Origin: Basidiobolus meristosporus CBS 931.73
Lineage: Eukaryota; Fungi; Basidiobolomycota
Assembly (NCBI GenBank): GCA_002104905.1
Contig: MCFE01000209.1
Location: 63,891-127,890, forward strand
Reading direction: 5' to 3'
DNA: 64,000 bases
Shown: in pieces, positions 17,301-64,000 of the stretch
Numbering within the stretch: the first letter of the stretch is position 1
Layout of the letters: every line of letters begins with the position of its first letter
Made by a program: the position numbers and the translations under genes
The notes under the pieces: generated by a model
Told to the model about the DNA's origin: nothing
The model's input: the letters and a program-made list of their open reading frames with translations, nothing else
Database searches by the model: none

Positions 17301-18983
17301 ACAGGTAGCCAAGTTTAATTGCATCAGATTAATATTGGCTATTGCAGCCAAATATAAGTTTTTTATTCATCAAATGGATGTAAAAACTGCAGTTTTGAAT
17401 GAAGAACTTGAGGATGTGTATATGGACCAGCCTGATGGGTTTGTTGACCAAGATAGCCCCCATTTGGTTGGCAAGCTTAAAAAGTCACTATATGGTCTCA
17501 AACAATCACCAAGAGCCTGGAATTGCAGGATAGATTCTTACTTGGAATCTTTGAGTTTCAAAAGGAGTAATGCTGACTATAGTATATACTATAAGCCAGA
17601 TAGAGCAAGTCCAGTTCTATTAGCTCTATATGTGGATGATCTTATTATAGCTGCCAATAATTTAGAGACATTGGAAGAGACTAAATCCAGCCTATCTAAG
17701 GAGTTCAAGATGTCCAACCTTAGAGAACTTTATTACCACTTAAGGATTAGGTTCTCCATACACAGAAGTACCCAGATTATCTCCCTAAGCCAATCCAAAT
17801 ATATCCAAGATATACTAAAGAAGTACCAAATAGAAGACTGTAAACTGGCAGCTACCCCAATGGAGACAAACCTTAACTTGGTCAAAACTCAACAGCAAAA
17901 CTCAACCAAGTCAAGTGAGCTTGGTGCCATCTGAAAGCCCTGACTTTCCTTATTAATCTAAGGTAAGCAGTCTGATGTATATCATGCTTGGAACACGTCC
18001 AGAAATCTTATATTCAGTGGGGGTTGTCAGCCAACATAATCAGAACTATGGATCTGATCATATTGCAGCAGTTAAGTGGATTTGTAGATACCTAAAAGGA
18101 GCAGCTGATATCTGCTTAAGATACACTTATAAGGATTCAGAACAGGATCTTGTGGGATACTCTGATGCTGATTGGGGATGAAATTTAGAAGACAGAAGAT
18201 CCACCACAGGATACACTGTTCTTTACTGTAAAGGAGCAATTTCATGGAACTCACAAAAGCAACCAACTGTAGCACTTTCCACCTCAGAGGCAGAGTATAT
18301 GGCAGTCCGTAAAGCTACAAAAGAAACAATGTGGTTAAGAGAACTTTTTATAGATTTAGGCCTATGTCAAAATATGTCTATTACTTTATTTCAAGATAAT
18401 CAAGGATATATACAACTAGGTAGAAATCCAACTTTTCATGCTAGAACCAAGCACATAGATATTAGACATCATTTCATACGTGAAGCTATAGAGAATAACT
18501 TAGTTAGCTTAGCTTACTGTCTTACAGATGAAATGATTGCAGACATATTTACCAAACCATTAGCTGGAGACAAGTTTGAATATCTTAGGTCAAAATTAGG
18601 ACTAGTCAGTGTGAACATTTAGCTGAGTGGGAGTGTTGTAAAGATTTGTATTTCCACCTAAATACTCACCCAACTTAGTCACTTAGATCATCACCTTCAA
18701 ATCCTAGAAAATACTGACCAAAATTGCTTGTCAGGATTGACTTGGAATATTTTCACCAAAACACCAAGTACCCAGAACATTAAAATTCTCAAAGTTGTCC
18801 AAACAGCCCCAAACTTTGCACACATGCTCTTGGGACCTTCCTCAACCTATTCTATGTGTTTGTAATGCCAAGACCAGGTAAAAGTATAAATACTACTTTT
18901 ACATTCAATAAATCATTAAGTGATAACCACATAATCTACTTGTTCTCCCAATCACTTCCAATATCTCCAAGACTCTTACAACA
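14377..18983 (+). mobile_element. Ty1/copia family D element D1 (both LTRs, internally deleted and disrupted), nested in gypsy C
   Basis: LTRs 14377-14726 and 18634-18983 (TGTTG...CAACA); PBS GGTTATGAGCCC; PPT GAGTGGGAG; gag with CCHC (CDYCKRKGHTSHRC), GAG-pre-integrase, RT (HQMDVKTA, LYVDDL) and RNase H (RTKHIDIRHHFIRE) broken by stops; part of the integrase is missing relative to D2; flanks TGAAA/ATAAA match imperfectly. Confidence 0.95.
14727..14738 (+). promoter_or_regulatory. Copia primer-binding site (GGTTATGAGCCC; internal tRNA-iMet half-molecule type)
   Basis: Immediately 3' of the 5' LTR; the same motif occurs at 48594-48605, with variants at 53072-53083 (minus) and ~35611-35625 (minus). 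Confidence 0.8.
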
Positions 18984-20876
18984 ATAAAGAGACCTTTCTC
19001 CTCCATGGTAAGAGTAGTCCCAATGGCTAACTCCATGAGCTTCTCTTCTGTGAGTCTGACTTTGTCATCTTTGTGCAAAGGCACCATTTGAGGATTGTTG
19101 TGGCCAGATGGTGAGATTCCAGTAGATACGGGCTTTGCTTTCAATGCAACTGGCTTATACTTGGTATTTGTCTTGCTTATTGTCAAGGGAATGCAGTGTT
19201 CATCATAAAACAAAATATCCTCATGAACCTGAATATTTTGTAATGGAATTGAGCCTGCATTTCTTGGATTGTTCTCTTCTGCTGCACAAAAGGTTGCCCT
19301 TTGTTTTTGATTGTCAGAAGTGATTGTCAGCCATAAGCTTCCATCAGGTCTGTTATCAGCTTGTAGAAGAGATTTTCTCTTATAAGGTTGTCCTAACAAT
19401 ACCTCAAAAGTGGGTCCATTGGCAACAATAAAAAAGAAAGAAGTAACCCTAATTCCTCCAATTTTGATTGGTAAAGAGTAACCAAGTCCAAGCATCTTCT
19501 CTGTTGCACCTGTAGCAGTTCTCATATTCCAGTCAACTTCTGTCAATGGTAATTTGATTTTTTCAAAAGTCATAGCAGCAATAGCATTGATTTCTGATCC
19601 AGAATCAAAAACACAGTCCACTTCAACATTGTTGATTGTAGCAGCATAGCTTCCTGTTGTGATAGAGTAAAAGGCTTTTTCCACTTCAAATTGTAGTTGT
19701 TCACTTGACAACATTGTTGACAACTGTTCTTGATAATTCTTCAGGGTATTTTTGTTCATAGGCTTAACTATCTCTGGTAGTAGTTGACTGGGATTGGTGA
19801 TAGTGGTGAACATTTCTTGATTTGTAAGTTGTGGAAATGGAGATTTCCAGAATTTGTTGATAACTTTCTGTGTAATTGCAGCAGTGTCACACTTAGATTG
19901 AGATTGCAAGTGTTCATTTTGGATTTTGATGTGTCTGGCTGTACCAATATTTCAGCAACTGGCTGATTTCTCTTGTTGGTACACACCTTTTGAGGACTGC
20001 TCTCCATAGAGACAAATTTTCTCTTATCAAAAAGGTAATTAAATTCTTCAACTTCCTCTTTTTCTGTTATATATTCTTGGACCTACCCTTATGGGTCTGA
20101 TATTGTGAGTATATAATGTTCATTGCTTGGAATTTTTGCAGTCTTTAGGATTTGAATAAAATTTGATGTTGTGGGGCTTTTACTTGATTCTTCTTGAGCA
20201 AATATATAGGACCGCATTCCACTGTAACCTCTGTTGATAGGCAACGGGTTTCTAGCAATATCACATATCTTCCCATAACAATCAATCATGACTTTATAAC
20301 TGTCAATATCAATATTCAATATTTGACAACCATAACAGCTATGTTCAGCAGATTCACAGCACACACAATACTTGGTTTGCTGTGGATAGTTACTGGTTGT
20401 TTTGGGATTTTCTGGTCTTGCCTTGTTGATGCTTGATGATGGTACACTTTGAGAGTCCAACTTGAGCATGAGTTTTCCAAAAGCATCAATTAATTCATTG
20501 ACCCAATCATTTTGTGGGTTATTTGTACAATGAAGAATTTGTTTAGCTAGAGTGGATATCCTCATTTGAGTATTAATGGAATCCATGACTTGTCTCCCTG
20601 ATTGATAGTTGAACATCATTTGTTTAACATTGTTGTAGGAGCTTGTAGCAAGAACTTGGTGGCTAATGGCATTATGTATCTCAGGAGGCATATCCATCAG
20701 AAATTTGTTTCTTTGATAAAATCTTGGAATTCCAAAAGCTGCTTCAACATGCCTTGCTTTTGACTAGATCCTGAGGCCTTTTGATTTATAGGCTTTGGCA
20801 AAATATTACATTTACTCCCTCCCAAGCTGGGATAGGTTTTTTGGTGGGCTTTATCTTTACGCACTGTTGTTGTGCT

Positions 20877-23800
20877 TGTTAAGATCTGCCGCTTGAATGT
20901 TTAAGTTAGATCAGTTTTTAGCCAAATCAATCAGTATATGTTTAGGTTATCAGTATATCAGTATTATCTATGAAATCAGTAGCATTAGTCAGCAAATGAA
21001 TCAGCAGCTCCTTAGCAGACAGAAATAGATATATTAAGTAGGATCTTATTGGGTGAGGATGATGCAATCAAATGAGTCATCAGCCACAACCTACATTAGG
21101 AAAAACAATTAGTCAGCAATTGATCTGGCAAAATGTATATAAGGAGCTGCTGGAACCTCAATAAAAATCAGTTCAAGTTTTAGTGAATACAATACTAGCT
21201 AAACTCCCTATTCCTCTACAACTCTTATACCAAGACTTGTAACATTGGTAGCAGCAATAACCAGAAACCTCCCTTTTGAAGAAAGAAGAAACCACCCTCA
21301 AAATGTCGGACAATCAAGAATGGAAGAATGCCATGCAGCAAATCCTGGCCCAATAGCAACAGTTACTCCAGATCCTCAGCCAACAGCAACAAGGAATGTC
21401 TACCATGGCTCAGAGCCAGCAAAGCCCTGTCAAGAGCAACTTCAGTGTGAAGGTCAACTGGTAACATGGCAGAGTCAATGAAAACCTGGGAACTTGACTC
21501 TTTCAGATTGAAGAAGCTTTTAACGCTAAAAGAATTGCTCCAGAGAGCAAGTTGCATTATGCAGCTTCTTACCTGGCAGATGCAGCTTTACAGTGGCACC
21601 ACAACAAGATCAGGTCAGCCACTATGATGGGATGCTCTATAATCCCTACCTGGGATGAGTTTGTGTTGGAAATTCAGGATGCTTTTGAACCTCCACACCA
21701 GCAGACACTACTAAGAAGGAAGTTAAAGACACTCAGATAGAAAGGAATGGTTCAAGAATACATCTACAAGTACAGATGTCTACTTGGACAAGCTGAAAGA
21801 ATGGACCTTGGATCAAGTAGAATACTTTATTGATAGGTTGAAAGAAAGAACTTGCAAGGAAGTGAATTATTGAAGACCTCAGACTATTGAAGAAGCCTTC
21901 AAGATTGCCATTGACTATGACTCAGCTATGTTTGGAGTTGGGAAGCCTACAGTGACTAATCAGAAAGGCTACAATCATTATGGAAGAAGACAGTCAGAAG
22001 CAGTACCAATGGATATAGATGCTATGCAGAAGAATCCTGCCTTGGAAGAATGTAAGAAGAAAGGACTTTGCTTCAATTGCCACCAGCAAGGACATATTGC
22101 AAAGTACTGCCCTCAGAGAAGAAATGGACACCAGCCATCAAGAACCTTTAACCGTATTGAGGCCATGGAGCATAGTAACATGGAGGATGAACTTGAAGAA
22201 GACTCAGAGCTCACCTTCCACATGACAAAAAAATACCTATCACAGATGACCTCAAACTCAGGAAAGCTATTGTACTTGAATGGAGTAATCAATGGAGTAC
22301 CTGCCAAGATCATGATTGACTCAGGAGCATTGCATGAGTACATGTCAGAGCAACTTGCTTTGAAAGCTGGAATCAACTTGGAACCTACCAAATCAACTTC
22401 AGTCTCCACAGCTGATGGGAACTCCCACATAATCAACCGTATTACCCAGCCAGTAAGAATGAAGATCAATGACTATGAAGAAGACCTACAGGCTTATATA
22501 TTTGGGAACTGCAAGTTTGACCTTGTACTTGGAAAAACCTGGCTATTTTGTCGTAATCCATCAATCAACTGGAGAACCCATGCTACTCAGATCCAAAAAG
22601 ACAACAAGACCTTTGAGCTATTACCTGCCAGGCTGGATTTTAACTTAGTCAAATCCAGTATGTGTGAGACAAGTGAACTTAGTAAGACCCAGTTCTGTAG
22701 AGCACTTAGAAAAGGTACACAGTTGTTCCTCATGGCGGTATTACAGGGGGATTCCTCTACCCCAGCACCCCAGCAGGTCCAGACTCTCTTGAAGAAGTAT
22801 TCAGCCGTGTTTCCAGATGAGCTTGTAAGCCTACCACCAGTCAGAGATGTGGACCATGCCATTGACACAGGAGATAGCCCTCCAGTAAGCAAGACACCTT
22901 ACAGAATGAGTCCATTGGAATTGGAGGAAATGAAGAGACAAATTGATCAGCTATTGGAGTGTTACAAGTCTTGGTATAAGAGTTGTAGAGGAATAGGGAG
23001 TTTAGCTAGTATTGTATTCACTAAAACTTGAACTGATTTTTATTGAGGTTCCAGCAGCTCCTTATATACATTTTGCCAGATCAATTGCTGACTAGTTGTA
23101 TTTCCTAATGTAGGTTGTGGCTGATGACTCATTTAATTGCATCATCCTCACCCAATAAGATCCTACTTAATATATCTATTTCTGTCTGATAAGGATCTGC
23201 TGATTCATTTGCTGACTAATGCTACTGATTTCATAGATAATACTGATATACTGATAACCTAAACATATACTAATTGATTTGACTAAAAACTGATCTAACT
23301 TAAACATTCAAGCGGCAGATCATAACATTCTCCCCTACTAAAGTTGAGAGGGTTCTCCTGAATATCTTTTCTTGTGATACCAATATCTTGATGGTTCAGT
23401 ATTATCAGCAAGTCTTGCAAGCTTGAGTCTGTCCCTATGCACTAAGTCTTCCTGGATATTGCCTTGTTTGTCCACCAGTTGGTAAGTTGCAAATGGACAT
23501 TCTCTGATGATCCTGAATGGTCCTGTCCATTGGGGCTCAAACTTCTTCCAAGTGTTGTTTCTTAGCAATACAAAGTTCCCAACTGTCAATGCTTCTGGTG
23601 CTGTAGTCTTATCAAATCTCTGCTTCATCTTTTCTGCACTTTGAGATACTTTGGTCTGTGCCTCTTGATGTCTTTGTTCCAGTTGCTGGTGTCTACTTGG
23701 CTGACTGAGTTCATCTTCTAAGGTGTCTGTATGTTTTGATTGTGTGAGATCTCCTGGAATCCTTGGTTCACATTCATAAACTAAGTAAAATGGTGATTAC

Positions 23801-26182
23801 TGGGTGGTGTTGTGTACTCTTACTCTGCATGCAAAGAGTGCTTGGTCTATATACTCATCCCATCTACTGACAACTCCATTTGCATACTTGGTCAGCATTT
23901 TTCCAAATAATCCATTAAACCGCTCAGTGACTCCATTAGTTCTGGGGTGATATGCCAAGGTTTTCAAGTGTCTAATCTGCTGCATTTCCAGGTAAGCCTC
24001 TAATGTCTTTGCCATAAAGCTTGCACCTCTATTGGATAAGATCCCCACTGGCATCCAAACTTCATCAGGATCTTGTGGTAAATGAAACTTGCAACTTCTT
24101 GTTCACTGGCTATTGGTACAGCTTTAGCAACTGGCCATTTAGTGGCATGGTCAATTGCTGCTAGGATCCAACGGTTGCATTTCCTGGTAGTTGGCAGTCT
24201 TCCAATAAAGTCAATTCCCCATCTCTCAAATGGTCTTACAGGCTCCAAAGGGAAGAGTTTGGCAGTTCTTTGTGGCTGGGCTTGATTGATTTGGCAGTTT
24301 GGACATGTTTTCACTAGCTTCTCAATATCTTGTTTCATTCTGGGCCACCATGCTCTGGCTTTCACAAGGCTATAGGTTCCTTCAATCCCAAGATGTCCAT
24401 ATCCATTGTGTAGCTTATGTATTAAATCCAGGCAAGAAACATAAGGGCAATAGGCAATACGGCTTCCATCAACAATTTGGTAGAGTGTTTCATCCTGTAC
24501 AACAAATTTGCTGGCTTCATCACGGATTATCTTCTTGATATCTTCATCCACCTCATTAGGAATGGCTTGGTCATCCAAGTACTTTGGTAATAGGCTAGGC
24601 CAATCTGATTCATGCACCAAGTTGAGTTGTGCAACTTGATCTAATCTTGATAAGGCATCAGCAACTGTGTTATTTTTTCCAGGGCAGTAGGCAATCTCCA
24701 GGTCAAATTGCTGAATGTATTCACTCCATCTTGTCATTGTTCTAGAGAGTACCTTCTGAGTAATATATACTTGAGGGAGGGATGATCAGTCTTGACAGTG
24801 CATTTGACTCCCTCAATATAGCATCTCCATCTCTTCAAACAGTGTATTTTAGCAAGCATCTCCTTCTCATGAACTGGATAGTTTTGTTCTGCTGAGTTCA
24901 GTTTCTTGGATTCAAAGGCAACAGGGTAGTCCTTTCCCTTGTGTTCTTGGCTCAGCACTCCACCAATTGCATAATCTGAGGCATCTGTGCACAGAGTGAA
25001 CTCTTTTCTGAAGTCTGGTATTCTTAAGCTTGGCAGCTTAGCAAGTTCATTCTTGAGCGTCTGGAAGGCAGTCTCACAAGCTATGTCCCACTCGTAGGCA
25101 TTGTCTTTCTTGAGGATATCAGTTAAAGGGGCTGCAATACTTGCAAAAGACTTGACAAATCTCCAATAATAGGAAACCATTCCAAGGAATGATCTGAGTT
25201 CTGATATGCTATGGTGCTGCTTCAAATTCTTGATTACTTCCACCTTCTTGGGGTCTAAGGTTACTCTTGTGCTAGTCACTATGTGTCCCAGATATTCTAC
25301 GTGTTCCTTGAAGAATTCACACTTGGGTAGCTTGCCATAAAGCTTGTTCTCTCTTAGCTTCTTCAAGATCTTTTCAATGTGCACCAAGTGATCCTCTTCT
25401 GTCTTGCTGTATATCAGTATATCATCTAGGTAAATTATCACAAACTTGTCCAAGTACTCCTGAAAGACAGTCTGCATCAGCGTCATGAATGTTGCAGGGG
25501 CATTAGTGAGGCCAAAACTTATGACTAAGTACTTGTAATGTCCATATCTGGTCCTAAATGCTGTCTTGGGAATATCTTCTGGTTTTGCCCTAATTTGGTT
25601 GTATCCTGACATGAGTTCAATCTTGCTGAAAATAGTGGCTCCATTAAGTTGGTCCAAAAGCTCATCAATCCAAGGTATGGGGTACTTATTCTTGATGGTA
25701 ACTGAGTTCAGGGCTCTGTAGTCAATGCACATCCTAAGAGTTCCATCCTTCTTTTTCACAAAAAGCACTGGTGCTCCCCAGGGTGACTTGCTGGGCCTGA
25801 TGTATCCTTGCTCATGTTATGATCTGCCGCTTGAATGTTTAAGTTAGATCAGTTTTTAGCCAAATCAATCAGTATATGTTTAGGTCATCAGTATATCAGT
25901 ATTATCTATGAAATCAGTAGCATTAGTCAGCAAATGAATCAGCAGATCCTTATCTGACAGAAATAGATATATTAAGTAGGATCTTATTGGGTGAAGATGA
26001 TACAATCAAATGAGTCATCAGCCACAACCTACATTAGAAAATACAATTAGTCAGCAATTAATCTGGCAAAATGTATATAAAGAGTGGCTGGAACCTCAAT
26101 AAAAATCAGTTCAAGTTTTAGTGAATACAATACTAGCTAAACTCCCTATTCCTCTACAACTCTTATACCAAGACTTGTAACA
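20877..26182 (+). mobile_element. Ty3/gypsy family A element A1 with its RT-RNase H-integrase half inverted
   Basis: 5' LTR 20877-21244, PBS TGGTAGCAG, and gag-CCHC-protease ORF 21928-22959 (CFNCHQQGHIAKYC, IMIDSGA) on +; antisense LTR 22960-23327; RT (YLDDILIYS), RNase H and integrase on - (23338-25814); sense LTR 25815-26182. Confidence 0.92.
22960..23327 (-). repeat. Family A LTR in antisense orientation at the inversion breakpoint
   Basis: Near-identical reverse complement of 20877-21244 and 25815-26182; PPT AGGGGAGAA (minus) at 23328-23336. Confidence 0.92.
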
Positions 26183-47989: not shown

Positions 47990-50900
47990 TGAATTTTTGG
48001 TTACTTCTCTTAAGAGTATCTTTGCTGTAAATGAGTTTAGTCTAAGATATATCTCCTCAGCAGCTGAACATGATTGTTTTATGTCTTAAAATACCTTCCC
48101 AGCATTCTTTGTTATTTTTGCTCTTCAGTATTCAATTGACAGTTTGTCTTTAACATTGAGGCAAACACAGTTAAAGGCAATTTGCTGATTCTTCTGGCAC
48201 TTTAAGACCTCTCCTCCTCACCTGTGGGGGAGCATATTTCTATCTGTTGTAAAAATTTGTAATTCCACCTAGATATTCACCTAACTTAGTCACTTCAATC
48301 AATACCCTAAAATCCTAGAGAATACTGACCAAATCCATTGTTGGGATTTACCTAGAATATTTTCACCAAAATATCAGGTACCCAGAACATGAAGATTCTC
48401 AAAGTTGTCCAAACAGCCCCAAACTTTGCACACATGTTCTTGGGACCTTCCTTAACCTATTATACGTGTTTGTAATGCCAAGACCAGGTAAAAGTATAAA
48501 TACTACTTTTGCATTCAATAAATCATTAAGGGAAAACCACATTATCTACTTGTTCTCCCAATCACTTCCAATATCTCCAAGACTCTTACAACAGGTTATG
48601 AGCCCTGGGCTGTCACTCTCTGCAATGTCTACTACTGCTATTACTGGAATTTTTACCTCTGCTGAAAAGTTGGATGGATCTAACTACCAAGTGTGGAAGG
48701 TGAAGATGAAGTTGCTGCTATAAGAAAGAGGCCTTTGGGATATTGTCATGGGAGAAGAATGCCCTCCTAAGAACATGGGAGAGGAAGCCTTAAAGTACAA
48801 GAAGAAAGAACAAAGTGCCTTTAATTGCATTTGCCTTAATGTTAAGGACAAATTGCTAATTCAATGCTCAGGAGCAAAAACGGCAAAGAATGCCTGGAAG
48901 GCATTAGAAGACACCTACCAGTCATGTTCAGCTGCCAAGAAGATGTATCTGAGACAAAAATTCTTTACTACAAAGATGCTGCCAGGAGAAGAAATGAAAA
49001 ATCTAATTAACATAATTACCCTGCTGGTAGATGAGATGGAATCTGTGGGCATACCAACTACTGATGAGGATGTGATAGTTACCATCCTGAATAGCCTGAC
49101 AGACAAGTTTCAGGGCCTTGTATCAGCCCTAGAGCTCAGAACTGAAGATTTGACCTTAAATTATGTATATGGAAGGCTCCTGGATGAAGAATTAAGAAAA
49201 TCAAGCGCTAATAAGAAGGAAGAAGAAAATGCTTTAATAAGCAATGATAGCCAACAAAGGAGGTACCCAAGACCCTACAAAGGCAACAGCAACCTATTTT
49301 GCAACTACTACAAAAGGAAAGGACACACATCAGACCGGTGTCTCAAAAAGAGAGATTATCAGCAAAAGAAGCCTGAATATGGAAATGTTGCAACAACTGA
49401 AGATATACTATGCATATCTGCACTAAATATGACCACAAACAAGGATTCTCAGATGCGGTATATTGACTCTGGAGCTTCTCAACACTTTACACACCAAAAA
49501 GAACTTTTTACCCAATATGAAGATATTCCAATTAAGAAGGTTTTCATGGGTGACAATAGAACACTTGATGCAGTGGGAGAAGGAACTATCCAAGTAAACC
49601 TAAGAAGCAGTGAAGGAAGTCATACACTGACCTTTAAAGAAGTACTCTATGTACCAGAAATAGCCAAGAACCTACTCTCTGTAAGCAAGGTCACAGCAGA
49701 AGGACTCAGTTTCAGTTTTGACAATTCTGGATGCAGGATCACTGATCAAAATGTTGCCCATATTGCTTTGGGCATCAGAGATCAGAATCTATACAAGTTG
49801 ACTTATATTCCATCATATTTGGTAGCCAATATAAGTAACTAAAATGAAGAAACACCAATGCTTTTGCACAGGAGATTTGGGCACATCAATTTTGATTATT
49901 TGTGCAAAATGATCAAAGATCAGCTAATTTCTGGAGTGAAAATTGATCCCCCAGCTAATTTGGAGCACTGTGAAGCCTGCATTTATGGGAAACAAGCCAG
50001 ACAACCGTTCAAGGGCTCTGGGTCAATCAAAACTAAGAAAAAATTAGATCTAACTCACTCAGATCTGTGTGGACCTATGCAAAATTTATCCTTAGGCAGG
50101 ATGAAGTATTTAATCACTTTTATTGATGATTATACAAGATACACATGGGTCTACTTCATGGAGAGAAAGGAAGAAGCTCTGTCTAAGCTCAGGGAGTTCA
50201 AAGCCATGCTGGAGAGAGAAACTGGTGAAAAAATCAAGAAAATACGCTCTGACAATGGTGGAGAATATACCTCAAAACTCTTCATCCACTTCTGCAAAAT
50301 TCATGGGATAAAGCAAGAGACTACTGTACCATACTCTCCACAGCAAAATGGAGTAGCAGAACGTGCTAACAGATCAATAATTGATATGGCAAGATCTATA
50401 ATCCATGATCAAAAATTATCCTATGATTTTTGGGCGGAATCAGTTGCCACCACTGTATACCTTAAAAATAGGAGTTATAACAGAATACTTTGTGCTTCTA
50501 CTCCACTTGAAGCATGGCATGGATACAGACCAAGTGCAGAACATCTAAGAATATTTGGGTGTACAGCATATGCCAAAAAACTGGCCAGAAATCAGTCAAA
50601 ATTTGAACCAAAAAGTGTAAAATGCGTATTTTTGGGCTACTGCAATGAGAGTAAGGCATACAGACTCTACAATACCAAAGCAAAGAAGCTGATCAAGTCC
50701 AGGGATGTGTTGTTTGATGAAAATTCAAAATTTTCACAAAAAATGACATCAGATGATGACAAAAATCTGATCTCAAGTCCACCAATTGTCAGGATTGAAT
50801 CAGAGCAAAACAATGAAAATTTTTCACTCCAGAGGACTCTACAACCATGGTTCAGCCAGAATCAGTGCCCAGGAATATCCCAGAAGTGATCATTCCAATA

Positions 50901-53430
50901 TCAAATGCCTGGAGATCCAATTGGACAAGAAATAGCTCAGATTACTATATCAATGAGGGTACAAACTTAGCCTATGCCTATTCAGTCCATATTGATGAAC
51001 CCCAGACTGTAAAAGAGGCCCTGAATAGCCCTCAGACAAAGTTTTGGAGATCTGCAATGACTGAGGAATATCAGGCCCTGATGGAAAATCAAACTTGGGA
51101 CTTGGTCAAATTACCAATCAACCAAAAATCAATTGGATGCAGATGGGTCTTTAAGACAAAGTACATGGCTGATTATACAATTGAGAGATACAAAGCAAGA
51201 CTTGTAGCCAAAGGATACTCTCAAACAAAAGGACTTGACTATACTGAGACCTTTGCACTGGTAGCCAAGTTTAATTCCATCAGATTAATTTTGGCTATTG
51301 CAGCAAACTAAAGTTTTTATTCATCAAATGGATGTAAAAACTGCATTTTTGGATGGAGAACTTGATGAGGAGATGTGTATGGACCAGCCTGATGGGTTTG
51401 TTGACCAAGATAACCCTCATTTGGTCTGCAAGCTTAAAAAGTCACTATATGGTCTCAAACAATCACCAAGAGCCTGGAATTGCAAGATAGATTCTTATTT
51501 GGAATCCCTGAGTTTCAAAAGAAGTAATGCTGACTATAGTATATACTATAAGCCAGATAGAGCAAATCCAGTTCTATTAGCTCTATATGTGGATGATCTT
51601 ATTATAGCCACCAACAACCTAGAAACATTGGAAGTGACTAAATCCAGCCTATCTAAGGAGTTCAAGATGTCTGATCTAGGAGAACTTAGTTACTACTTAG
51701 GGATTAAGTTCTCCATAGACAGAAGTACCCAGACTATTACTCTAAGCCAGTCCAAGTATATTCAAGATATACTAAAGAAGTACCAAATGGAAGACTGTAA
51801 ACTGGCAACTACCCCAATGGAGACAAACCTTAACTTGGTCAAAACTCAACCAAATCAAGAGAGCTTGGTGCCATCTGAAAGCCCTGACTTTCCTTATCAA
51901 TCTATGGTTAGCAGTCTGATGTATAACATGCTTGGAACATGTCCAGATATCTCATATTCAGTGGGAGTTGTCAGCCAACATAATCAGAACTATGGATCTG
52001 ATCATATTGCAGCAGTTAAGTGGATTTTTAGATACCTAAAAGGAACTGCTGATATCTGCTTAAGATACACTTATAAGGACTCAGAACAGGATCTTGTGGG
52101 ATACTCTGATGCTGATTGGGGACAAAATTTGGAAGACAGAAGATCCACCACAGGATACACCTTTCTTTACTGTAAGGAGCAATTTCATGGAATTCAAGAA
52201 AGCAACCAACTGTAGCACTTTCCACCACAGAGGCATAGTATATGGCAGCCTGTGAAGCTACAAAAGAAGCAATGTGGTTAAGAAAACTTTTTACAGATTT
52301 AGGCTTATGTCAAAAAACGCCTATTACTTTATTTCAAGATAATCAAGGATGTATACAATTAGGTAGAAATCCAACTTTTCATGCTAGAACCAAGCACATA
52401 GTTATTAGACATCATTTCATATGTGAAGCTATAGAGAATAACTTAGTTAGCTTAGTTTACTGTCCTACAGATGAAATGATTGCAGACATATTTACCAAAC
52501 CATTAGCTAGAGACAGGTTTGAATATCTTAGGTCAAAATTAGGACTAGTCAGTATGAACATTTAGCTGAGTGGGAGTGTTGTAAAAATTTGTAATTCCAT
52601 TTAAATATTCACCTAACTTAGTCACTTCAATCATTACCCTTAAATCCTAGAAAATACTGACCAAATTCCTTGTTGGGATTTACCTAGAATATTTTCACCA
52701 AAATACCAGGTACCCAGAACATGAAAATTCTCAAAGTTGTCCAAACAGCCCCAAACTTTGCACACGTGTTTTTGGGACCTTCCTTAGCCTATTCTACGTG
52801 TTTGTAGTGCCAAGACCAGGTAAAAGTATAAATACTACTTTTACATTCAATAAATCATTAAGTGAAAACCACATTATATACTTGTTCTCCAAATCACTTC
52901 CAATATCTCCAAGACTCTTACAACACTATCATGGCAGTGTTCCAAAGGCCTCTTTCCTGCAACAGCATCTTTATTGTCACCTTCCAGATTTCATAGCCAG
53001 ATCCATGCAGCTTTTTAGCAGACAGAAAGTTCCACTTATATGGTGTTTAACACTTCAGAGAGTGAGAGCTTGAGCTTATAACCTGTTGTAAGAGTTCTGG
53101 AGAAATTGCAAGTGACGGGGAGTACAGGTAGACTATGTGATTTTCAATTGATGATTTATGAATGTAAATGCAGCATTTATACTTTTACATGGTCCTGGGA
53201 AAAAACCACATTGAATATGTTTGGGAAGATCTCAAGAATATGTGTGCAAAGGTTGTGTGGCTTGGACAACTCTGTGGAATTTCATACTCTGGGTACCTGA
53301 TATTTTGTTGAATGTATCCTAAGTAAGCCCCAAGAAAGAATATGGTCAGAATTCTCTAAGACTCATTGGTAATGATCTAAGTGCCCCAGTTAGGTGAGTA
53401 TTTAGGTGTAAATACTAAGCTTACAAAACA
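47990..53430 (-). mobile_element. Older copia family D remnant D3 (5' LTR, PBS, start of gag), split by D2
   Basis: LTR 53084-53430 and PBS GGTTATAAGCTC on minus; gag AKKLHGSGYEIWKVTIKMLLQERGLW (52926-53030) continues at 48244 and below. Confidence 0.8.
48245..52925 (+). mobile_element. Full-length Ty1/copia element D2 (4681 bp), ORF broken by stops and frameshifts
   Basis: LTRs 48245-48593 and 52577-52925 (~19 differences in 349 bp); perfect 5-bp TSD CTATC; PBS and PPT; gag, protease (YIDSGASQH), integrase (HSDLCG, RSDNGGEY, QNGVAER), RT and RNase H in copia order. Confidence 0.97.
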
Positions 53431-54442: not shown

Positions 54443-55315
54443 ATGCCAGAGCAAACCGAGGACCTGGATCTCTACGAGATACTTCAGGTCGGCCAGGAGG
54501 CTTCGCTCAGCGAGGTGAAGCGAGCCTACTACAAACTGGTCCTGCTGCACCACCCATACAAAGCCCGGGAGGACGTGGAGGCCTCCAAGCTGAATTTCGA
54601 ATAGATCGGGTTCGCTACGCAGTGCTAGGCGATGCCAAACGTAGGAGTCACTACGATCGAACCGGCTCGACGGAGGAGGGGTTACTGGACGATGTGGAGG
54701 GTAGGGATTGGATCGCATACTTCCAGGAACTGTTCACCAGCTTCCCCACGGAGAGCATTCAGGAGTTCTCGGAGAAATACAAATGCATGCTTGTTTGAAG
54801 TGGGTCTTTCCTCCCCTTCGTCCCTCTATTAATCCTAACCCTGAACTTCGCGGGTCACTTCGCGAAGGCTCCACCGAAGAATACGAAGACCTGATCACGG
54901 CCTATGAAACGCACAAGGGTGACATGGGCCTGATCCTGAGCCCAGTGCTACTCGCCGAAGCTGAGGATGAGGATCGCCTACGGGAAATATTGCACTCCGC
55001 CATCAAGAAGGGAGATGTCAAAGCGTACAAGAAATTCACCAAGGTCGACAAGAAAGCCAAAGCGCGTAGACGTCAAGCTGCTGCCAAGGAGGCGAAGGAG
55101 CTGGGCATAGACAAGAAGTTGAAACGGAAGCCGACGAGGATTCCCTACGAGCATTGATCCAGCAACGCAGCGGGAACCGAATGAATCCGCTGATGGACAG
55201 TCCGGAGGCCAAGTATGCCTCGAAGGAAATCAAGGGGAAGAAGAGAAAGACCTTGGCCAAGGAGCCCTCGGAGGAGTTCCAGGCGCTGCAAGAGAAGCAT
55301 TTCGCCCGCAAGTGA
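54443..55315 (+). pseudogene. DNAJC9: DNAJC9-like J-domain protein pseudogene
   Basis: J-domain DLYEILQV..EASLSEVKRAYYKLVLLHHP with HPD changed to HPY (54551-54559); in-frame TAG at 54602-54604; a 1-bp loss before YAVLGDAKRRSHYDRTG; a predicted GC-AG intron 54785-54867; GSTEEYEDLITAYETHKGDM; a second frameshift at ~55125 before DEDSLRALIQQR...EAKY. Confidence 0.7.
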
Positions 55316-55508
55316 TGAAAGACCTTTATTTATGTACTGCTTGATCCATACCAGACTTTCAAGAAATCCCTTTTTATTAAACAAAAGTGCGTGGCTGATT
55401 CTCCAGCAAATAAAAACATCTATTCTTCAAGGAATACTGTACTGTACATGAAATTAAGATTGGCTTCGGTGGTGGTGGTGGTGGCAGTGGCACCGGGAAG
55501 CCGACTTC

Positions 55509-56935
55509 TCAGATATCTTGTTGCAACGAATTGAATACTTTCCAAAAGAATACACCAGCGTCGCCCTTGGAGAACGATATGGCTTTGGTCAGATATCCAG
55601 GCAAGATCTGCATCAGGGCCGTATCGGCCTCGTCCAGGTTGGGCTCGAAATGGTACGAGTCAGGCTCATCGTGCTCCAGCCGTAGAATATACCGGAATAC
55701 TGCAACAATGACCAGGTTAGTGTAGGTTGGAGAAGGGGCATCCAGCATCCAAGGGGGTTTACCTCCGTTGCGACCAGTTTGTTCGCACTCCCAAGTGGTC
55801 CCCTCTTTCTCTCGCTCCATGGATATGACCTGTAGGCCAGCAAGCTCCTTGTACAGCCCCAAAGACAAGGTGAGATCGTCCTGTTGATTCACGGCCAGCT
55901 TCTGGTTTTCGGCTTGCAGCTGCTCGACTAGAAACGGAGGGTTATGGTGCGGCCCTCACAATGGGACCATGTTGAAGCAACTTACTTTGTTCCTTCAGTG
56001 AGTGGATGTCCTCCTCTTGCTTTTGAATCAGACTCTCCTCCTTCGAGTTGGTCTTGGATTTCTTAAGCGTCGCGATCTGTCCCTTCAGTTGGTTGATGAG
56101 GTTGTCCGAAACTAAGGTGGCGGTTAGTAAGCCTGCTACCACCAGAATAGCCAGCGCACTTACATTTGAAGCGGTCTTGCGCGTTCTTTTTGTACTCTCC
56201 GAAATTTGTCTCAGCCTCTTGGATACCGATACGCTTCAATTCCTCGTATCTTTCTAGAAGGTCGCGGTACTCCCTCTTGACCTAGAATGAAGGTGAAGTT
56301 AGCTACCGCGTGGGGCAGGCGGTGAGTTCGCGTTTGTTACCTTTTCGAGGTCATCAGTGTTTGCCAGAGAAGGATGGCCAGCTTCATCTGATCTATTGGT
56401 ACGCTTGGACCGAGGCTTATCTAGGGTGACGGCTCCATTGGTTACATCTTTGCTTATTTCCCGTGCTCTCTTTCTGGGAGGAATGGGGGAATGATTAGCG
56501 GTGTACACTACCGCCGACTCCCGGTCTCTAGGGGGAGACACCAAAACGGAGAACTCGGGGGAATCCGGGTCGGCGTCTGTCGTCCGGGAACCAAAACTGA
56601 CAGATTTACGGGATTTCCTCTCCTGTCTAGTTGCCTTTGGTGGGGTTGCCTCCATCGAATCATCGCTCAACAAGAGTTTCGCCTCAGCGCGTGAAACTAG
56701 AGGGCGGTTACAAAGCTGTGAGTACTTCGCAATAAAAGAGGGTGGAACGTGACGGATACTCACTTCCTCTGGCAGGCTTGCTTTCCTCAGAAGGCTTGGC
56801 TGCGGCAGGAAAGAGCAGTTCAGTCCATCTGAATCAGTAAAAACGCGAAATTCGCTTGGCCGACAACATACCTGAGGCGGACTTTTTTTTCTTTGCGGCG
56901 GCACTCCTTCTGGCTTTGTAAAACGGGCGAGGCAT
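55509..56935 (-). CDS. CSM1: Csm1/Pcs1-like monopolin subunit (multi-exon)
   Basis: Predicted ATG at 56935 with GT-AG introns that keep frame; basic/Ser-rich N-terminus; coiled coil YEELKRIGIQEAETNFGEYKKNAQDRFK; C-terminal LYKELAGL...WECEQTGRNG.VFRY...YHFEPNLD...LPGYL...ISF...FFWKVFNSL matches the Csm1/Pcs1 RWD-like domain pattern as I recall it. Confidence 0.72.
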
Positions 56936-57546
56936 TTTAACACGTGAAGCGGGTGGGGGCACTGGAGTGTTAGAGGTGAAAAATTGAGAAGGTTTGGAGC
57001 TCACGAGAGTAATGTCTCTTCTGGAATAGACGAAAATGTCGGGGAAAATAAGTAAATGGTTTAAAACAAACCACCAAATCTCATGCAGAACCCGAATAGC
57101 GGGGCAAAGAATTTTCGCGTATGAGCATCTTCAAACAAACAAGCCCTCAGAACGTAGCCAATCAACACCAAAGCTCGTCTCTTTGTTGTGATTCAGCATG
57201 TTGTCAGAGCCATGGACCTGAGTCAGCTAAGCAATTGATATTCCTGGTTAACATTCAGGTTAAGTTGTGAAGAAAGTTTCCATTAGGTTCCTATAGAGTC
57301 AGCCAATGGTGGAGTTGACCAGGTTGCTGATAATCAAATCTTACATAGCTACAGTCGTTGAAGTACGAGGTCACTTGATTGCCAAAATTAGATAAATGTG
57401 TATAGGAGACATCAAGATAGATACCATCTCTGATCAATACCTACTTACCCCAACCATCTTCAGATATTATAATTCAAGACTAAAATATAAATACTTCTCT
57501 TGGTACGCGAAGGAAACTCGCCTTCATTAATCAAGAGGTTTCACAA

Positions 57547-59184
57547 ATGTTCAAGACTTCGATTGCCGGAATTTCTATCCTCAGTAAGGTTAAGCCAGCT
57601 CAGGCTGAGATCCTCACTGATGATGCTATCAGATTCGTAGCTACCCTTCACCGCGCCTTCAATCCTACTCGCTTGGCCCTCCTCAAGCGTCGTGAGGAGC
57701 GTCAGAGAGAGCTCGACAACGGTGTTCTCCCCGACTTCCTCCCCGAGACTGCCTACATCCGTAACGACCCCAACTGGAGAGCTGCTCGCCCAGCCCCCGG
57801 CCTCGAGGACCGTCGTGTGGAGATCACTGGCCCGGTCGACAGAAAGATGGTCATCAATGCCTTGAACTCCGGGGCCAAGACTTTCATGGCCGACTTCGAG
57901 GACTCCTCAGCCCCCACCTGGGACACCGTCCTCGATGGTCAGATCAACATGCGCGATGCCCTTCGTCGCACCATCACCTTCACCGCCCCCAATGGCAAAT
58001 ACTACAAGCTTCGTGATGACGGCAAGATCGCCACCCTGCTCGTGCGTCCACGTGGATGGCACATGGAGGAGAAGCACTTGTTGATCGACGGCCAGCCTTG
58101 CTCAGCGTCCATCTTTGACTTTGCCTTGTACTTCTTCCACAACGCCCGCAAGTCCATCGAGATCGGGGCCGGACCCTACTTCTACCTGCCCAAGATGGAG
58201 TCCCACCTCGAGGCCAGACTCTGGAACGACGTGTTCAATGCCGCCCAGGACATCCTCAGCATCCCCCGCGGGACCATTCGTGGCACCGTGCTGATCGAGA
58301 CCATCCTTGCCTCCTTCGAGATGGACGAGATCATCTACGAGCTCCGCGACCACTCCTCCGGACTGAACTGCGGCCGCTGGGACTACATCTTCTCCTTCAT
58401 CAAGAAGCTCCGCCAGCACCAGAAGTTCGTCTTGCCCGACCGGTCTGATGTCACCATGACCTCACCATTCATGGATGCCTATGTCCGCTTGTTGATCAAG
58501 ACCTGCCACAAGCGTGGAGTGCACGCGATGGGAGGCATGGCCGCCAACATCCCCATCAAGAACAACCCGCAAGCCAATGAGGCCGCCATGCAAAAGGTCC
58601 GCAACGACAAGCTTCGTGAGGTGAAGGCTGGCCACGACGGTACCTGGGTTGCCCACCCCGACCTCGTTAAGATCGCCACCGGAATCTTCAACGAGCACAT
58701 GGCCACCCCCAACCAGATCCACATCCGTCGCGACGACGTCGAGGTCTCTGCCGCCGACCTTCTCAACAACAACATCGAGGGCGGCAAGATCACCGAGACT
58801 GGCATCCGCAACAACATCTCTGTTGGCCTCGCCTACACCGAAGCCTGGCTCCGTGGTTTGGGATGCGTCCCCATCCACAACCTCATGGAGGATGCCGCCA
58901 CTGCCGAGATCTCTCGCTCCCAATTGTGGCAATGGGCCAAGCACCAGGTGAAGACCGCCGAGGGCAAGCAAGTCACCCAGCAATGGCTCCAGCAACTGCT
59001 GAACGAGGAGACCGACTCGCTGAAGAAGCAGCTCGGCAACAAGTATGCCAGCTACAAGTACGACCTCGCCAAGAAGTACATGGCCGGGCAGGTGTCGGGC
59101 AAGAACGAGGACTATGCTGACTTCCTGACCACCTTGATCTACGATGAGATCACCACTCTTCCTTCCACCAAATCCAGACTTTAA
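57547..59184 (+). CDS. MLS1: Malate synthase (glyoxysomal, MSA-type), 545 aa, intronless
   Basis: [44 protein letters not shown] and [18 protein letters not shown] motifs; C-terminal SRL peroxisomal targeting signal; strong codon bias. Confidence 0.98.
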
Positions 59185-59543
59185 ATCACCAGTTCCTTAA
59201 GATGCACATTGTACATTTCTCAATGTCCTACATTACTCAATTCGCATTCCAAGGGCTTAATATCCCACGAACCCTTAAATCGTCCCTTCGTGAAAAGTAA
59301 ATAAAAAATCCTAGTTCCACAGCGAATTTTACTAGGGGTCTATGGGCCGAACCAAATTTATTTAGTAAGAATCCAACATTGAAACACCACCTGGTATGCT
59401 AGGGAAGGCGTTCGCCAAGAATCCTTGGCCGCCCGGTTGCTAATCTCGATGTCACGCTAAGACGGTGGGCTTTAAACTCATCATAAGTCACGGTTAAACA
59501 ACATAAATTAAGTATATTACATTTCAAATGAAAAAGCGTCTTA

Positions 59544-62456
59544 TTAATACCGTGGGGGTCTAAAACCTCCTTTGCTCCCACCGCGTTGAGGTGGGCGGTC
59601 GTATGGGCCACCTCTACCACGGCCATTCTGGAATCGGGGAGCTCTATTGTTGTCGTTCATCGGACCACCTCGGCCTCGTGGGTCAAAGCCCCTGGGGTTG
59701 TTCCCAGCGTGGAGTGGTGGTGGCGGTGGTGGTGAAGAGTTCTCGTTGAATCTTCTTTTCCCATAGGGCGGTGCACCTTGGTCTTGGTATCCACCTCTCG
59801 TGGGCGCACCTTGTTCGGGATAGCCATGTGAAGGCCCGGTTGGGTGTCGATTGAGCCGCGGGTCTTGAGGGGGACCATTGTCAGTATAACCCCTAGGTGG
59901 GCCACCATCATTGAATGATCCTCGAGGACCTTGTGGAGGTGGAGGCGGTCTAGAATCAAATCCGCCCCGAGGTCCGGAGGGAGGGCGAGATCCATCAAAT
60001 TGGCCTCGGGATCCACTCATAGAGCCATTTGTCGGAGGGCGTGAAGGATAGTCGCCAGGTGGACCTTGTCGCGAAGATGGGAAAGGGGGTTGTCCAGATC
60101 CAGAGGGCGGCCTTATGCCGGGTGGCATGTTATTGGATGACCTATGTTGCGAATGGAATGAGCCCCCATGACCACCCATCTGACCAGGTGGGCCATTAGG
60201 TTTAAATGGATAATCGTTTGGTGGCGGACCACGATCGTGCATGGGTCCGTTGCGAGACTTCGCCATACCAAAGCCAGGCAGCGGGCCATTTCTATCATGA
60301 GCATTTCCAAGACCAGGCGGGGCAAAGCTGTCTTTCTTGTTGGCTGAACCATGATAGTTCTTGTTGAACATGGATAGACCTGGAACATGGCTGTCTGGAA
60401 AGGAGTTATCAAAGTTAGCACAAACCCTGTATAACCCGAAGCGACGACTACACTAAATAAACGAACCCTCTTCCCAATGCTGCTCGTTAGCATTGAGGCC
60501 ATCAGGTTTCTCGTCGGATTTTTCGGATGGGTCTCCGGGTCTTTCACGAGTCCAAAATTTGGTCGAGTGGTCGTTGGAGCCTGAGGCAATGATATGGCCA
60601 ACTGGATGCCAATCCAAAGACCAGATGTTTTGTTCATGAGCTCCATCAATATTTGCAACAGCTTGGTCATTTCTTTCAACCAGAAGATCATTGTTAGTAA
60701 CCCAGCAGTGAAGATTAGTTGCAGCAATGAAACTCACCCTATAAGCCAGTATGTGAGTGAGCCTTCAGAGCCACCAGTGGCCAATAGGCGTTCGTGGATC
60801 GGATGCCATGAAAGAGCTTTACTCGAGTTAGTATAAAAGTAAAGATTAAAGGTGCTTCAATCTCTACTCACAAGATAGCTCTTCCTTTCCGCTTCTGAAT
60901 GTCTGGAGTTCCTTCATCATTCGAATGTCGTAGACTTTCATCATTTGGTCTCTGGCAACCGTGGCGAGCCAATTCCCGTTCTTGTTCCATTCTATACCAC
61001 TTACGGTGGCCTTGTGACCATGTCTGGCACGATGGGTTAGAGACATTGATTGATGGGCCAATGTGCAGATAACTTACAATGTTGTCAAGTTTCGTCCAGA
61101 TTTAGGATCCCACAGCTTTACCAGGTTATCTTTCGAGCCAGAAGCAAGGAGCGCTTTGGACGGATGCCAGTCAACGCACTTTACATCCCAACCGTGACCT
61201 ACAAATGCTCAATGATAAGAAAACATGGCGCGATTGCCAACATGGTCGCAAATAAGGTGCACCTGTTAAGATTTTTTCCTCGATGCCTTCATTGAAATTC
61301 CAAATCTTGATGGTTCCGTCATCCGAACATGTGGCAAATTTGACATCAGTGGGCGAAAACCTAAAGGATGATCTTGAGTTTTCTTTACAAGTAACAATCG
61401 AGGGTCCAACTGCTACTCACGCTATATCACGGATTGCCTCCTTGTGGCCTTGGAATACTTTGAGATTGTTCATATTAGACTGCCAGTACTTGATAACGCC
61501 ACTATGATCTGCGGTTACCATCCAATTGTCGTTGTGGGTCCACTCCATGGCTCGCACGGCAGTGTCATGAGCCTTAAAGTTTGCCAATGAGCATCCATAA
61601 TGCACGAGGTCAAAAATGTAGCACCAACCTGAAGAATTGTTTCAAAATTGAAGGTCAACCCGTTCCAAAGGGTAAACTCCCCACTAGTAGAGCCGGTAAT
61701 CAAACGTCTGCCTTCTGGGGTCCACTGAAAAGTAAATAGAGCTACAATCAACCACTGATCTGACCCCAAGAAGCAATGCGCCTACTTACCTTAACGACGT
61801 TAACCGGGCAACGAATCTTGTTTGTTGAGGTGTGAACAAACTTGGTGGCTCCGGAGTCCACAGGGTTGTTTAAATGAAAAGAAGTGGGCAGTAGCTATTA
61901 CGTAGCGGACCAGGTATGATGTTACGACCAAGCAGATACGTGTCCAAAAAAAAACTTTATTATTAGATAAATTGCATATATACAGTACTCATCAAGAATT
62001 ACCAGTGCTTGTAGCAACCTGGCAATATCGAGTTGTGAGAGAACAAGAGCTTATTCATAACGGGCACTTACGTTTACGATGAAGTTGGGGTTGGGTCTAA
62101 GTATAGGCAGATCTCTATGATCTCTGAGGCTTGGACGAAGCTGGAGAAAAAATAAAGAAGGTTATTAACCAGCTCGGGCAATTTGAGGTCTACGTCAGTG
62201 ATCGGAGCATGACTAGAAGTAGGAAATGCACACAGACAAAACCAAACCGTTGGCCTACCTCTGTTCCCAAAGCGATTGAGGAGTTATAGTCGACTGTACG
62301 TCGTTGGATGGCTTTCCGAAGACTTTTACCATCGAAAGTCATACGATTTGAGTAGCCCATTCCACCGCCTCCGCCCATACCACCTCCGGGATTATGACTA
62401 CCGCCTCCGCTTCCGCTACTACCTCCTCCTCTTCCGCCACGTTCATAGGCAGGCAT
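59544..62456 (-). CDS. PFS2: Polyadenylation factor subunit 2 / WDR33 (WD40 protein with Pro/Gly/RGG-rich tail), multi-exon
   Basis: [110 protein letters not shown]; canonical introns checked at the 5' end; low-complexity last exon to the stop at 59544. Confidence 0.93.
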
Positions 62457-62898
62457 TGTTAACAGGTAAACTATGTAGGTTTTGCTAAAGGTATTCTGTA
62501 GATGTGTATGTTAATTGTATAACGCGAGATATTGAAGATCAAGATGGTCTAATGTATCATCACATTGAAATTATCCACAGGAGTACAGATCTTAAAATTT
62601 TCTTCAATGGGCGAAGTTGATACGTACTCGGCATGAGCTGATGGATATAAAATCATTTCCTAATACAGCATGTGTTGGATGATATATCTAGGTTTTGTAA
62701 TTAGATTGAATTCTGAAACCGTTTAACCTCACACACCGTCTGCCTCATGGCAAGGGGGCACTGATTCCTGTACATTGGGCAAACCATATAATTTTAGTGT
62801 ATTTATTAGGAGACAGAGGCTACCAAATATTTGGGAAGATGATATATGCTGATGCAAAGTTGCGTGTTTACAAGATAATTAGGTGTTTTGTAAAGTAT

Positions 62899-64000
62899 TT
62901 AGAGTCTGGATTTGGTGGAAGGAAGAGTAGTGATCTCATCGTAGATCAAGGTGGTCAAGAAGTCAGCATAGTCCTCGTTCTTGCCCGACACCTGCCCGGC
63001 CATGTACTTCTTGGCGAGGTCGTACTTGTAGCTGGCATACTTGTTGCCGAGCTGCTTCTTCAGCGAGTCGGTCTCCTCGTTCAGCAGTTGCTGGAGCCAT
63101 TGCTGGGTGACTTGCTTGCCCTCGGCGGTCTTCACCTGGTGCTTGGCCCATTGCCACAATTGGGAGCGAGAGATCTCGGCAGTGGCGGCATCCTCCATGA
63201 GGTTGTGGATGGGGACGCATCCCAAACCACGGAGCCAGGCTTCGGTGTAGGCGAGGCCAACAGAGATGTTGTTGCGGATGCCAGTCTCGGTGATCTTGCC
63301 GCCCTCGATGTTGTTGTTGAGAAGGTCGGCGGCAGAGACCTCGACGTCGTCGCGACGGATGTGGATCTGGTTGGGGGTGGCCATGTGCTCGTTGAAGATT
63401 CCGGTGGCGATCTTGACGAGGTCAGGGTGGGCAACCCAGGTACCGTCGTGGCCAGCCTTCACCTCACGAAGCTTGTCGTTGCGAACCTTTTGCATGGCGG
63501 CCTCGTTGGCTTGCGGGTTGTTCTTGATGGGGATGTTGGCGGCCATGCCTCCCATGGCGTGCACTCCACGCTTGTGGCAGGTCTTGATCAACAAGCGGAC
63601 ATAGGCATCCATGAATGGTGAGGTCATGGTGACATCAGACCGGTCGGGCAAGACGAACTTCTGGTGCTGGCGGAGCTTCTTGATGAAGGAGAAGATGTAG
63701 TCCCAGCGGCCGCAGTTCAGTCCGGAGGAGTGGTCGCGGAGCTCGTAGATGATCTCGTCCATCTCGAAGGAGGCAAGGATGGTCTCGATCAGCACGGTGC
63801 CACGAATGGTCCCGCGAGGGATGCTGAGGATGTCCTGGGCGGCATTGAACACGTCGTTCCAGAGTCTGGCCTCGAGGTGGGACTCCATCTTGGGCAGGTA
63901 GAAGTAGGGTCCGGCCCCGATCTCGATGGACTTGCGGGCGTTGTGGAAGAAGTACAAGGCAAAGTCGAAGATGGACGCTGAGCAAGGCTGGCCGTCGATC
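62899..64000 (-). CDS. MLS1: Second malate synthase copy, 3' two-thirds (5' end beyond the window, ATG expected near 64536)
   Basis: Protein identical to copy 1 over the visible 1102 bp, including the SRL end; 10 synonymous nucleotide differences. Confidence 0.97.

Follow-up and report, generated by a model that had tools for sequence, protein, structure and literature searches.

How do two malate synthase genes that face each other across an unrelated gene come to share almost every nucleotide up to the stop codon, and practically none beyond it? The locus that raises this question lies at the right-hand end of the window, by which we mean the whole stretch of 64,000 nucleotides of Basidiobolus meristosporus DNA that was analysed. 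Copy A is followed by a WDR33/Pfs2 gene that points at it, and then by copy B, which points at WDR33; A and B thus stand tail to tail. An earlier note on this DNA had read the arrangement as a pair of old paralogues whose coding regions are kept homogeneous by conversion between nearby inverted copies. The features on which the argument turns are the following.

57547..59184, plus strand: copy A of malate synthase A, a complete intronless coding sequence of 545 aa with a C-terminal SRL (PTS1-like)
58083..59186, plus strand: first arm of the inverted repeat, running from codon 180 of copy A to codon 545, with the stop codon and the next 2 nt
58669..59124, plus strand: longest fully identical tract, 456 bp; a candidate for the latest conversion tract (permutation P = 0.046-0.050)
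59125..59184, plus strand: last 60 nt of the coding sequence, with 3 of the 10 A/B differences (binomial P = 0.0145, post hoc)
59185..59543, no strand assigned: 3' intergenic region common to the convergent copy A and WDR33; 359 nt, 40% GC, unrelated to the flank of B
59544..62456, minus strand: multi-exon WDR33/Pfs2 gene (WD40 subunit of pre-mRNA 3'-end processing), from ORF pieces, Pfam WD40 and PDB matches
62457..62898, no strand assigned: intergenic region from the WDR33 start to the copy B stop; 442 nt, 35.5% GC; the 3' flank of B and presumably the WDR33 promoter
62897..64000, minus strand: second arm of the inverted repeat, being copy B residues 180-545 plus the stop (CDS 62899-64000), from the repeat search and a base count

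The identification of both genes as malate synthase, made in the earlier note, is upheld by matches to Pfam, TIGR01344 and PDB 3cux. Copy A has the full-length three-domain architecture (MS_N PF20656, 8e-22; MS_TIM-barrel PF01274, 1.8e-119; MS_C PF20659, 6.3e-42), and scores 811.4 bits against TIGR01344, the malate synthase A equivalog model, well above the cut-off of 594.5. The 366 visible amino acids of copy B score 569 bits, and fall below the cut-off only because the window end truncates the protein. Copy A aligns with the solved bacterial enzyme 3cux at 652 bits, and the motifs RPRGWH, LIET, GRWDY and MEDAATAE are identical in its alignment to 3cux_A. We take the active-site residues to be the Arg of RPRGWH, the Glu of LIET, the Asp of GRWDY and the Asp of MEDAATAE, as in the E. 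coli enzymes; all nine Basidiobolus malate synthase proteins of our sequence alignment have E251, D279 and D449. Both copies end in SRL, which agrees with what we take to be the PTS1 consensus, (S/A/C)(K/R/H)(L/M), and is thus a predicted peroxisomal or glyoxysomal signal. For the spacer gene, the minus-strand ORF pieces were searched one exon at a time, without joining, and gave WD40 Pfam matches exon by exon; in the PDB, their best matches are WDR33, at 1e-29 with one exon and 2e-5 with the N-terminal one, and yeast Pfs2.

Within 50-64 kb the repeat search returned one long inverted pair only (58083-59186 with 62897-64000; 1104 nt, 99% complementary), whose arms are separated by 3710 nt. Elsewhere in the window there are no further malate synthase fragments, and no copies of the A promoter or of the spacer. 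A base-by-base comparison of 58083-59184 on the plus strand with 62899-64000, read as its reverse complement, shows 10 mismatches among 1102 positions, all of them synonymous; nine of the differences are C/T transitions, and the longest identical run is the 456 bp of 58669-59124, in agreement with the earlier note on every one of these counts. The remaining difference is G/C. The note's statement that the two genes are identical in protein holds for residues 180-545 (366 aa), which is all that the window shows of copy B. Nine of the ten differences fall at third codon positions, and the tenth is the first position of a Leu codon (CTG/TTG). They are unevenly distributed along the alignment: a first stretch of 586 bp has seven of them, the next 456 bp none and the final 60 bp three. 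The synonymous divergence is dS = 0.043 (10/241 synonymous sites), and the nonsynonymous divergence is nil (dN = 0/860). Because ten synonymous changes out of ten would have a chance of 0.22^10 in an unconstrained sequence, the visible part of copy B is, as judged from its codons, a selected gene and not a decaying fragment, and the pattern of substitution shows purifying selection on both visible copies.

The boundary of the similarity is as sharp as had been described. Both copies continue from TAA into AT and then into unrelated 3' flanks, so that the match stops 2 nt past the TAA. Residual homology between the 3' flanks of A and B was sought over 700 nt of each and in both orientations, and none was found; the local alignment score is 21, versus 20.5 +/- 2.1 for shuffled sequences. 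The pair thus combines a coding dS of 0.043 with flanks that score like shuffles, a contrast that refers to the 3' side only. The “two different sets of regulatory flanks” of the earlier note can be retained for the 3' sides only, because the promoter of copy B is absent from the assembly. Copy B runs on the minus strand from 62899 to the window end, and so converges on copy A from the far side of WDR33/Pfs2. A database protein from the same 127,890-bp contig (P0122, 366 aa) begins at I180, the first whole codon at the window end. Since gene callers begin models in this way at contig ends, the scaffold very probably stops at window position 64000, inside copy B, and this leaves the 5' third of the gene (its first 179 codons) and its promoter unassembled. 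Similar breaks probably occur in this assembly at other converted families.

The two genes belong to a larger family. The B. meristosporus genome contains at least seven malate synthase copies, at least six of which encode proteins that are at least 97% identical. A word-index protein search with copy A returned copy A itself, then a 91% paralogue, after which come proteins at 68-75% from early-diverging fungi, Mucoromycota among them. The cluster at 90% identity contains eight proteins: copy A (P0001), P0122, P0121, P0124, P0125, P0126 and two from Basidiobolus ranarum. P0121, P0124, P0125 and P0126 are all encoded on one 244,099-bp contig, and we refer to them as the four-copy array. Their proteins are identical over residues 45-495, with the differences confined to residues 2-44 and 496-543, and over the first 16 residues they are as diverged as the oldest paralogues of Basidiobolus. 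Two of the array models are odd: among P0124 and P0125, one stops early at residue 520 and has four odd residues, and the other is without residues 161-174; these deviations are either gene-model errors or real lesions in the array copies.

It is the array that provides the clearest trace of exchange. P0121 has ends like those of A (2 differences from A versus 8 from its array neighbour P0126) and a core like that of the array (7 differences from A versus 0 from P0126), a discordance that is significant at the protein level (Fisher P = 0.0023). Because ends and core disagree in this way, and such a mosaic is the signature of conversion, gene conversion demonstrably operates in the malate synthase family of this genome. 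At six residues (236, 238, 414, 431, 478 and 482) copies A and B agree with each other and are distinct from all array copies, and since these diagnostic residues set the pair apart from the array, each locus is homogenised locally. Inside the Basidiobolus clade the protein tree resolves only the A+B grouping (93/83), the branches being too short to order the other copies. The two B. ranarum proteins are 92% and 95% identical to copy A. That species has at least two copies, P0127 on a 6114-bp contig and P0123 on one of 1559 bp, and its homologue closest to A is on the 1559-bp contig, which spans the coding core alone. Such a contig would be expected if B. ranarum, too, had multiple copies whose cores are identical and whose flanks differ.

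For the A/B pair alone, the evidence for conversion is suggestive. The tract test on the identical 456 bp is borderline, with P = 0.050 when all sites are used and 0.046 when they are weighted by synonymous sites. The crowding of three differences into the final 60 nt of coding sequence (P = 0.0145, in a window chosen post hoc) is of the kind that would be expected if conversion tracts rarely extend to the end of a homology block. The base composition of copy A also changes along the gene: GC3 is 0.55 in codons 1-60 and 0.82 in codons 61-545, compared with 0.40-0.60 in the neighbouring genes, and the change point falls at codon 60 (likelihood ratio 20.9), close to residue 45, where the array core starts. 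The high GC3 of the core fits GC-biased conversion, and selection on codons in a conserved core would look alike. GC-biased conversion of the core further predicts that the identity of A and B ends near codon 45-60. The conversion claim of the earlier note therefore stands in part: it is borne out within the family by the P0121 mosaic, and the contrast between coding sequence and flanks fits it, while the tests on the pair itself are only borderline.

The process that we consider most relevant here would work as follows. Gene copies that lie near each other may repeatedly be used for each other's repair, or be copied into each other, through non-reciprocal homologous recombination, and the arms in question are only 3.7 kb apart. 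Conversion would start and resolve only where the sequences remain similar. A coding sequence under selection would accordingly stay near-identical, as the unconstrained flanks drift beyond the reach of alignment, and the edge of identity would come to lie at the stop codon. On balance we consider it probable, with some reservation, that A and B evolve in concert by interlocus gene conversion between the inverted arms, and we infer that the pair is old and maintained by conversion rather than young. The 456-bp tract would then represent the latest conversion event. The donor may have been genomic DNA or cDNA, between which an intronless gene gives no means to tell. The idea in the earlier note that conversion preserves glyoxylate-cycle dosage is speculation.

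The abrupt drop from 99% identity to random similarity, with no gradient in the flanks, also fits a duplication breakpoint, and the strongest competitor to conversion starts from this fact. In this explanation, an inverted duplication limited to the ORF placed a copy, ending 2 nt past the stop codon, on the far side of WDR33 at a time that corresponds to about 0.02 synonymous substitutions per site in each lineage, and the ten differences have accumulated since then under purifying selection without any conversion. The low and roughly clock-like dS of 0.043, the dN of zero, the razor-sharp edge, the position of A and B as sisters in the protein tree and a tract test that is not clearly significant at P of about 0.05 are all in keeping with such an event, and it has been cautioned that ORF identity between unrelated flanks results from recent ORF-confined duplication as well as from conversion (PMC3966223). 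However, it is improbable a priori that a breakpoint should fall within 2 nt of the stop codon, and one at that place would have deprived copy B of its 3' UTR. In addition, the uneven spacing of the differences (none in 456 bp, three in 60 bp) is unexpected under uniform accumulation, and other copies of the family pair old ends with identical cores, which recency alone cannot yield. We therefore regard a young duplication as possible but somewhat unlikely.

Two further explanations deserve much less weight. The terminal 1.1 kb of copy B might be an artefact of assembly or polishing, mis-joined or homogenised by reads from other copies, and the apparent end of the scaffold inside copy B (P0122 starting at I180) and the presence of at least six copies with at least 97% identical proteins are circumstances in which this could happen. 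Copy B nevertheless has the six diagnostic residues of A rather than those of the array, and so does not derive from array reads; the A/B differences are third-position transitions and not the indel-type errors of long reads, and the junction with the unique WDR33 flank falls within the scaffold. This makes an artefact very unlikely. A palindrome created by hairpin reads was rejected, as it would have produced a mirrored spacer as well, and the actual spacer is unique. It is still more improbable, to the point that we give it hardly any credence, that the arms belong to an invertible (flip-flop) cassette with the function of turning WDR33 around or switching the two genes between 3' contexts. 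The geometry would be suitable, as arms of 1.1 kb and 99% identity enclose a 3.7-kb unit with a complete gene and that gene's own flanks, but there is no recombinase gene or site, with no recombinase found in 54-64 kb, and a single orientation is seen in the assembly. Inversion would moreover leave all three genes unchanged and so switch nothing, and an occasional crossover is the expected by-product of any inverted repeat.

An origin of one copy as a processed retrocopy was also considered and rejected at the 3' end, where there is no shared 3' UTR and no poly(A) or A-run, and where similarity ends 2 nt past the stop. The malate synthase gene is intronless beside the multi-exon WDR33, and reverse transcriptases are abundant in the window; an ancient cDNA step in the history of the family, or cDNA donors of the kind proposed for gene conversion among fungal ribosomal protein genes (PMC6993855), are possible.

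Concerted evolution by interlocus conversion would be nothing new in itself: we consider the A/B locus to be a known process at an undescribed locus, with no new mechanism, and our literature search found no paper on Basidiobolus malate synthase. In gene-bearing palindromes, such as those of sex chromosomes, arm-to-arm conversion maintains identities of about 99% or more around a unique spacer. A and B resemble these in being inverted arms of about 99% identity around a unique spacer, but palindrome arms are tens of kb long and include intergenic DNA, whereas the arms here measure at least 1.1 kb and are coextensive with the coding sequence, and the spacer contains an essential housekeeping gene. 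The malate synthase paralogues MLS1 and DAL7 of Saccharomyces cerevisiae are diverged, functionally specialised and under different regulation. They share with the present case the occurrence of more than one malate synthase A gene in a fungal genome, but differ in that A and B are identical in protein as far as they are visible, within a family of at least seven members. The four-copy array of the same genome belongs to the same gene family and likewise has homogenised cores (residues 45-495, at the protein level). In contrast to the array copies, A and B are inverted with another gene between them, are identical in protein to the last codon, and have their own six diagnostic residues.

Concerted evolution of duplicates by gene conversion has been treated in theory (PMC3924837), and the process has been described for fungal ribosomal protein paralogues (PMC6993855) and for the inverted pairs hsp16, col-12/13 and hsp70 of C. 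elegans, which are paralogues maintained by conversion (PMC3966223). The A/B pair is like these in its near-identical coding sequences, synonymous sites included, between diverged or unalignable flanks, and in the closeness of the copies on one chromosome, for which tail-to-tail or head-to-head orientation is allowed. The enzyme, malate synthase, and the fungal lineage, Basidiobolus, distinguish it from them, and the intron test for a cDNA donor is inapplicable here.

If the pair is old, it offers a compact and datable case of inverted-arm conversion, in which two enzyme genes on either side of an essential gene are kept identical. Homogenisation in this genome is local, as the A/B pair and the four-copy array show by having separate diagnostic residues at each locus. 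Conversion makes duplicates seem young and breaks assemblies inside genes, and it can bias both counts of gene duplications and GC3-based inferences in Basidiobolus. A much broader proposal, which we put forward as rather improbable, is that Basidiobolus has unusually intense short-range ectopic conversion and carries its expanded metabolic families as interchangeable and error-corrected copies under different promoters, with a rise in core GC3 due to GC bias. By analogy with yeast DAL7, the expansion of malate synthase could be an adaptation to glyoxylate derived from purines, urate or allantoin, or to lipid-rich substrates, in the guts of amphibians and reptiles.

Several features of the surrounding DNA can be described briefly. 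Upstream of copy A are a DNAJC9-like HTH gene on the plus strand and a Csm1/Pcs1-like gene on the minus strand (region 54708-55892 and 56299-56943); the 214-aa ORF at 56299-56943 on the minus strand is without a Pfam match. Positions 1-54000 of the window form an AT-rich field (37-41% GC) of broken and decayed LTR retrotransposons of the copia and gypsy types, with copia-type gag, integrase and RVT_2 pieces at 48748-52215 and 17209-17934, and gypsy-type protease, RT, RNaseH and integrase pieces at 18905-25768. Because this field occupies the first 54 kb, GC content rises sharply at about 54 kb, where the gene island starts. At 52588-53418, immediately downstream of the copia-like element, imperfect inverted repeats of 157, 76 and 40 nt are nested in one another, with 78-88% complementarity; they may represent a foldback element or the remains of LTRs.
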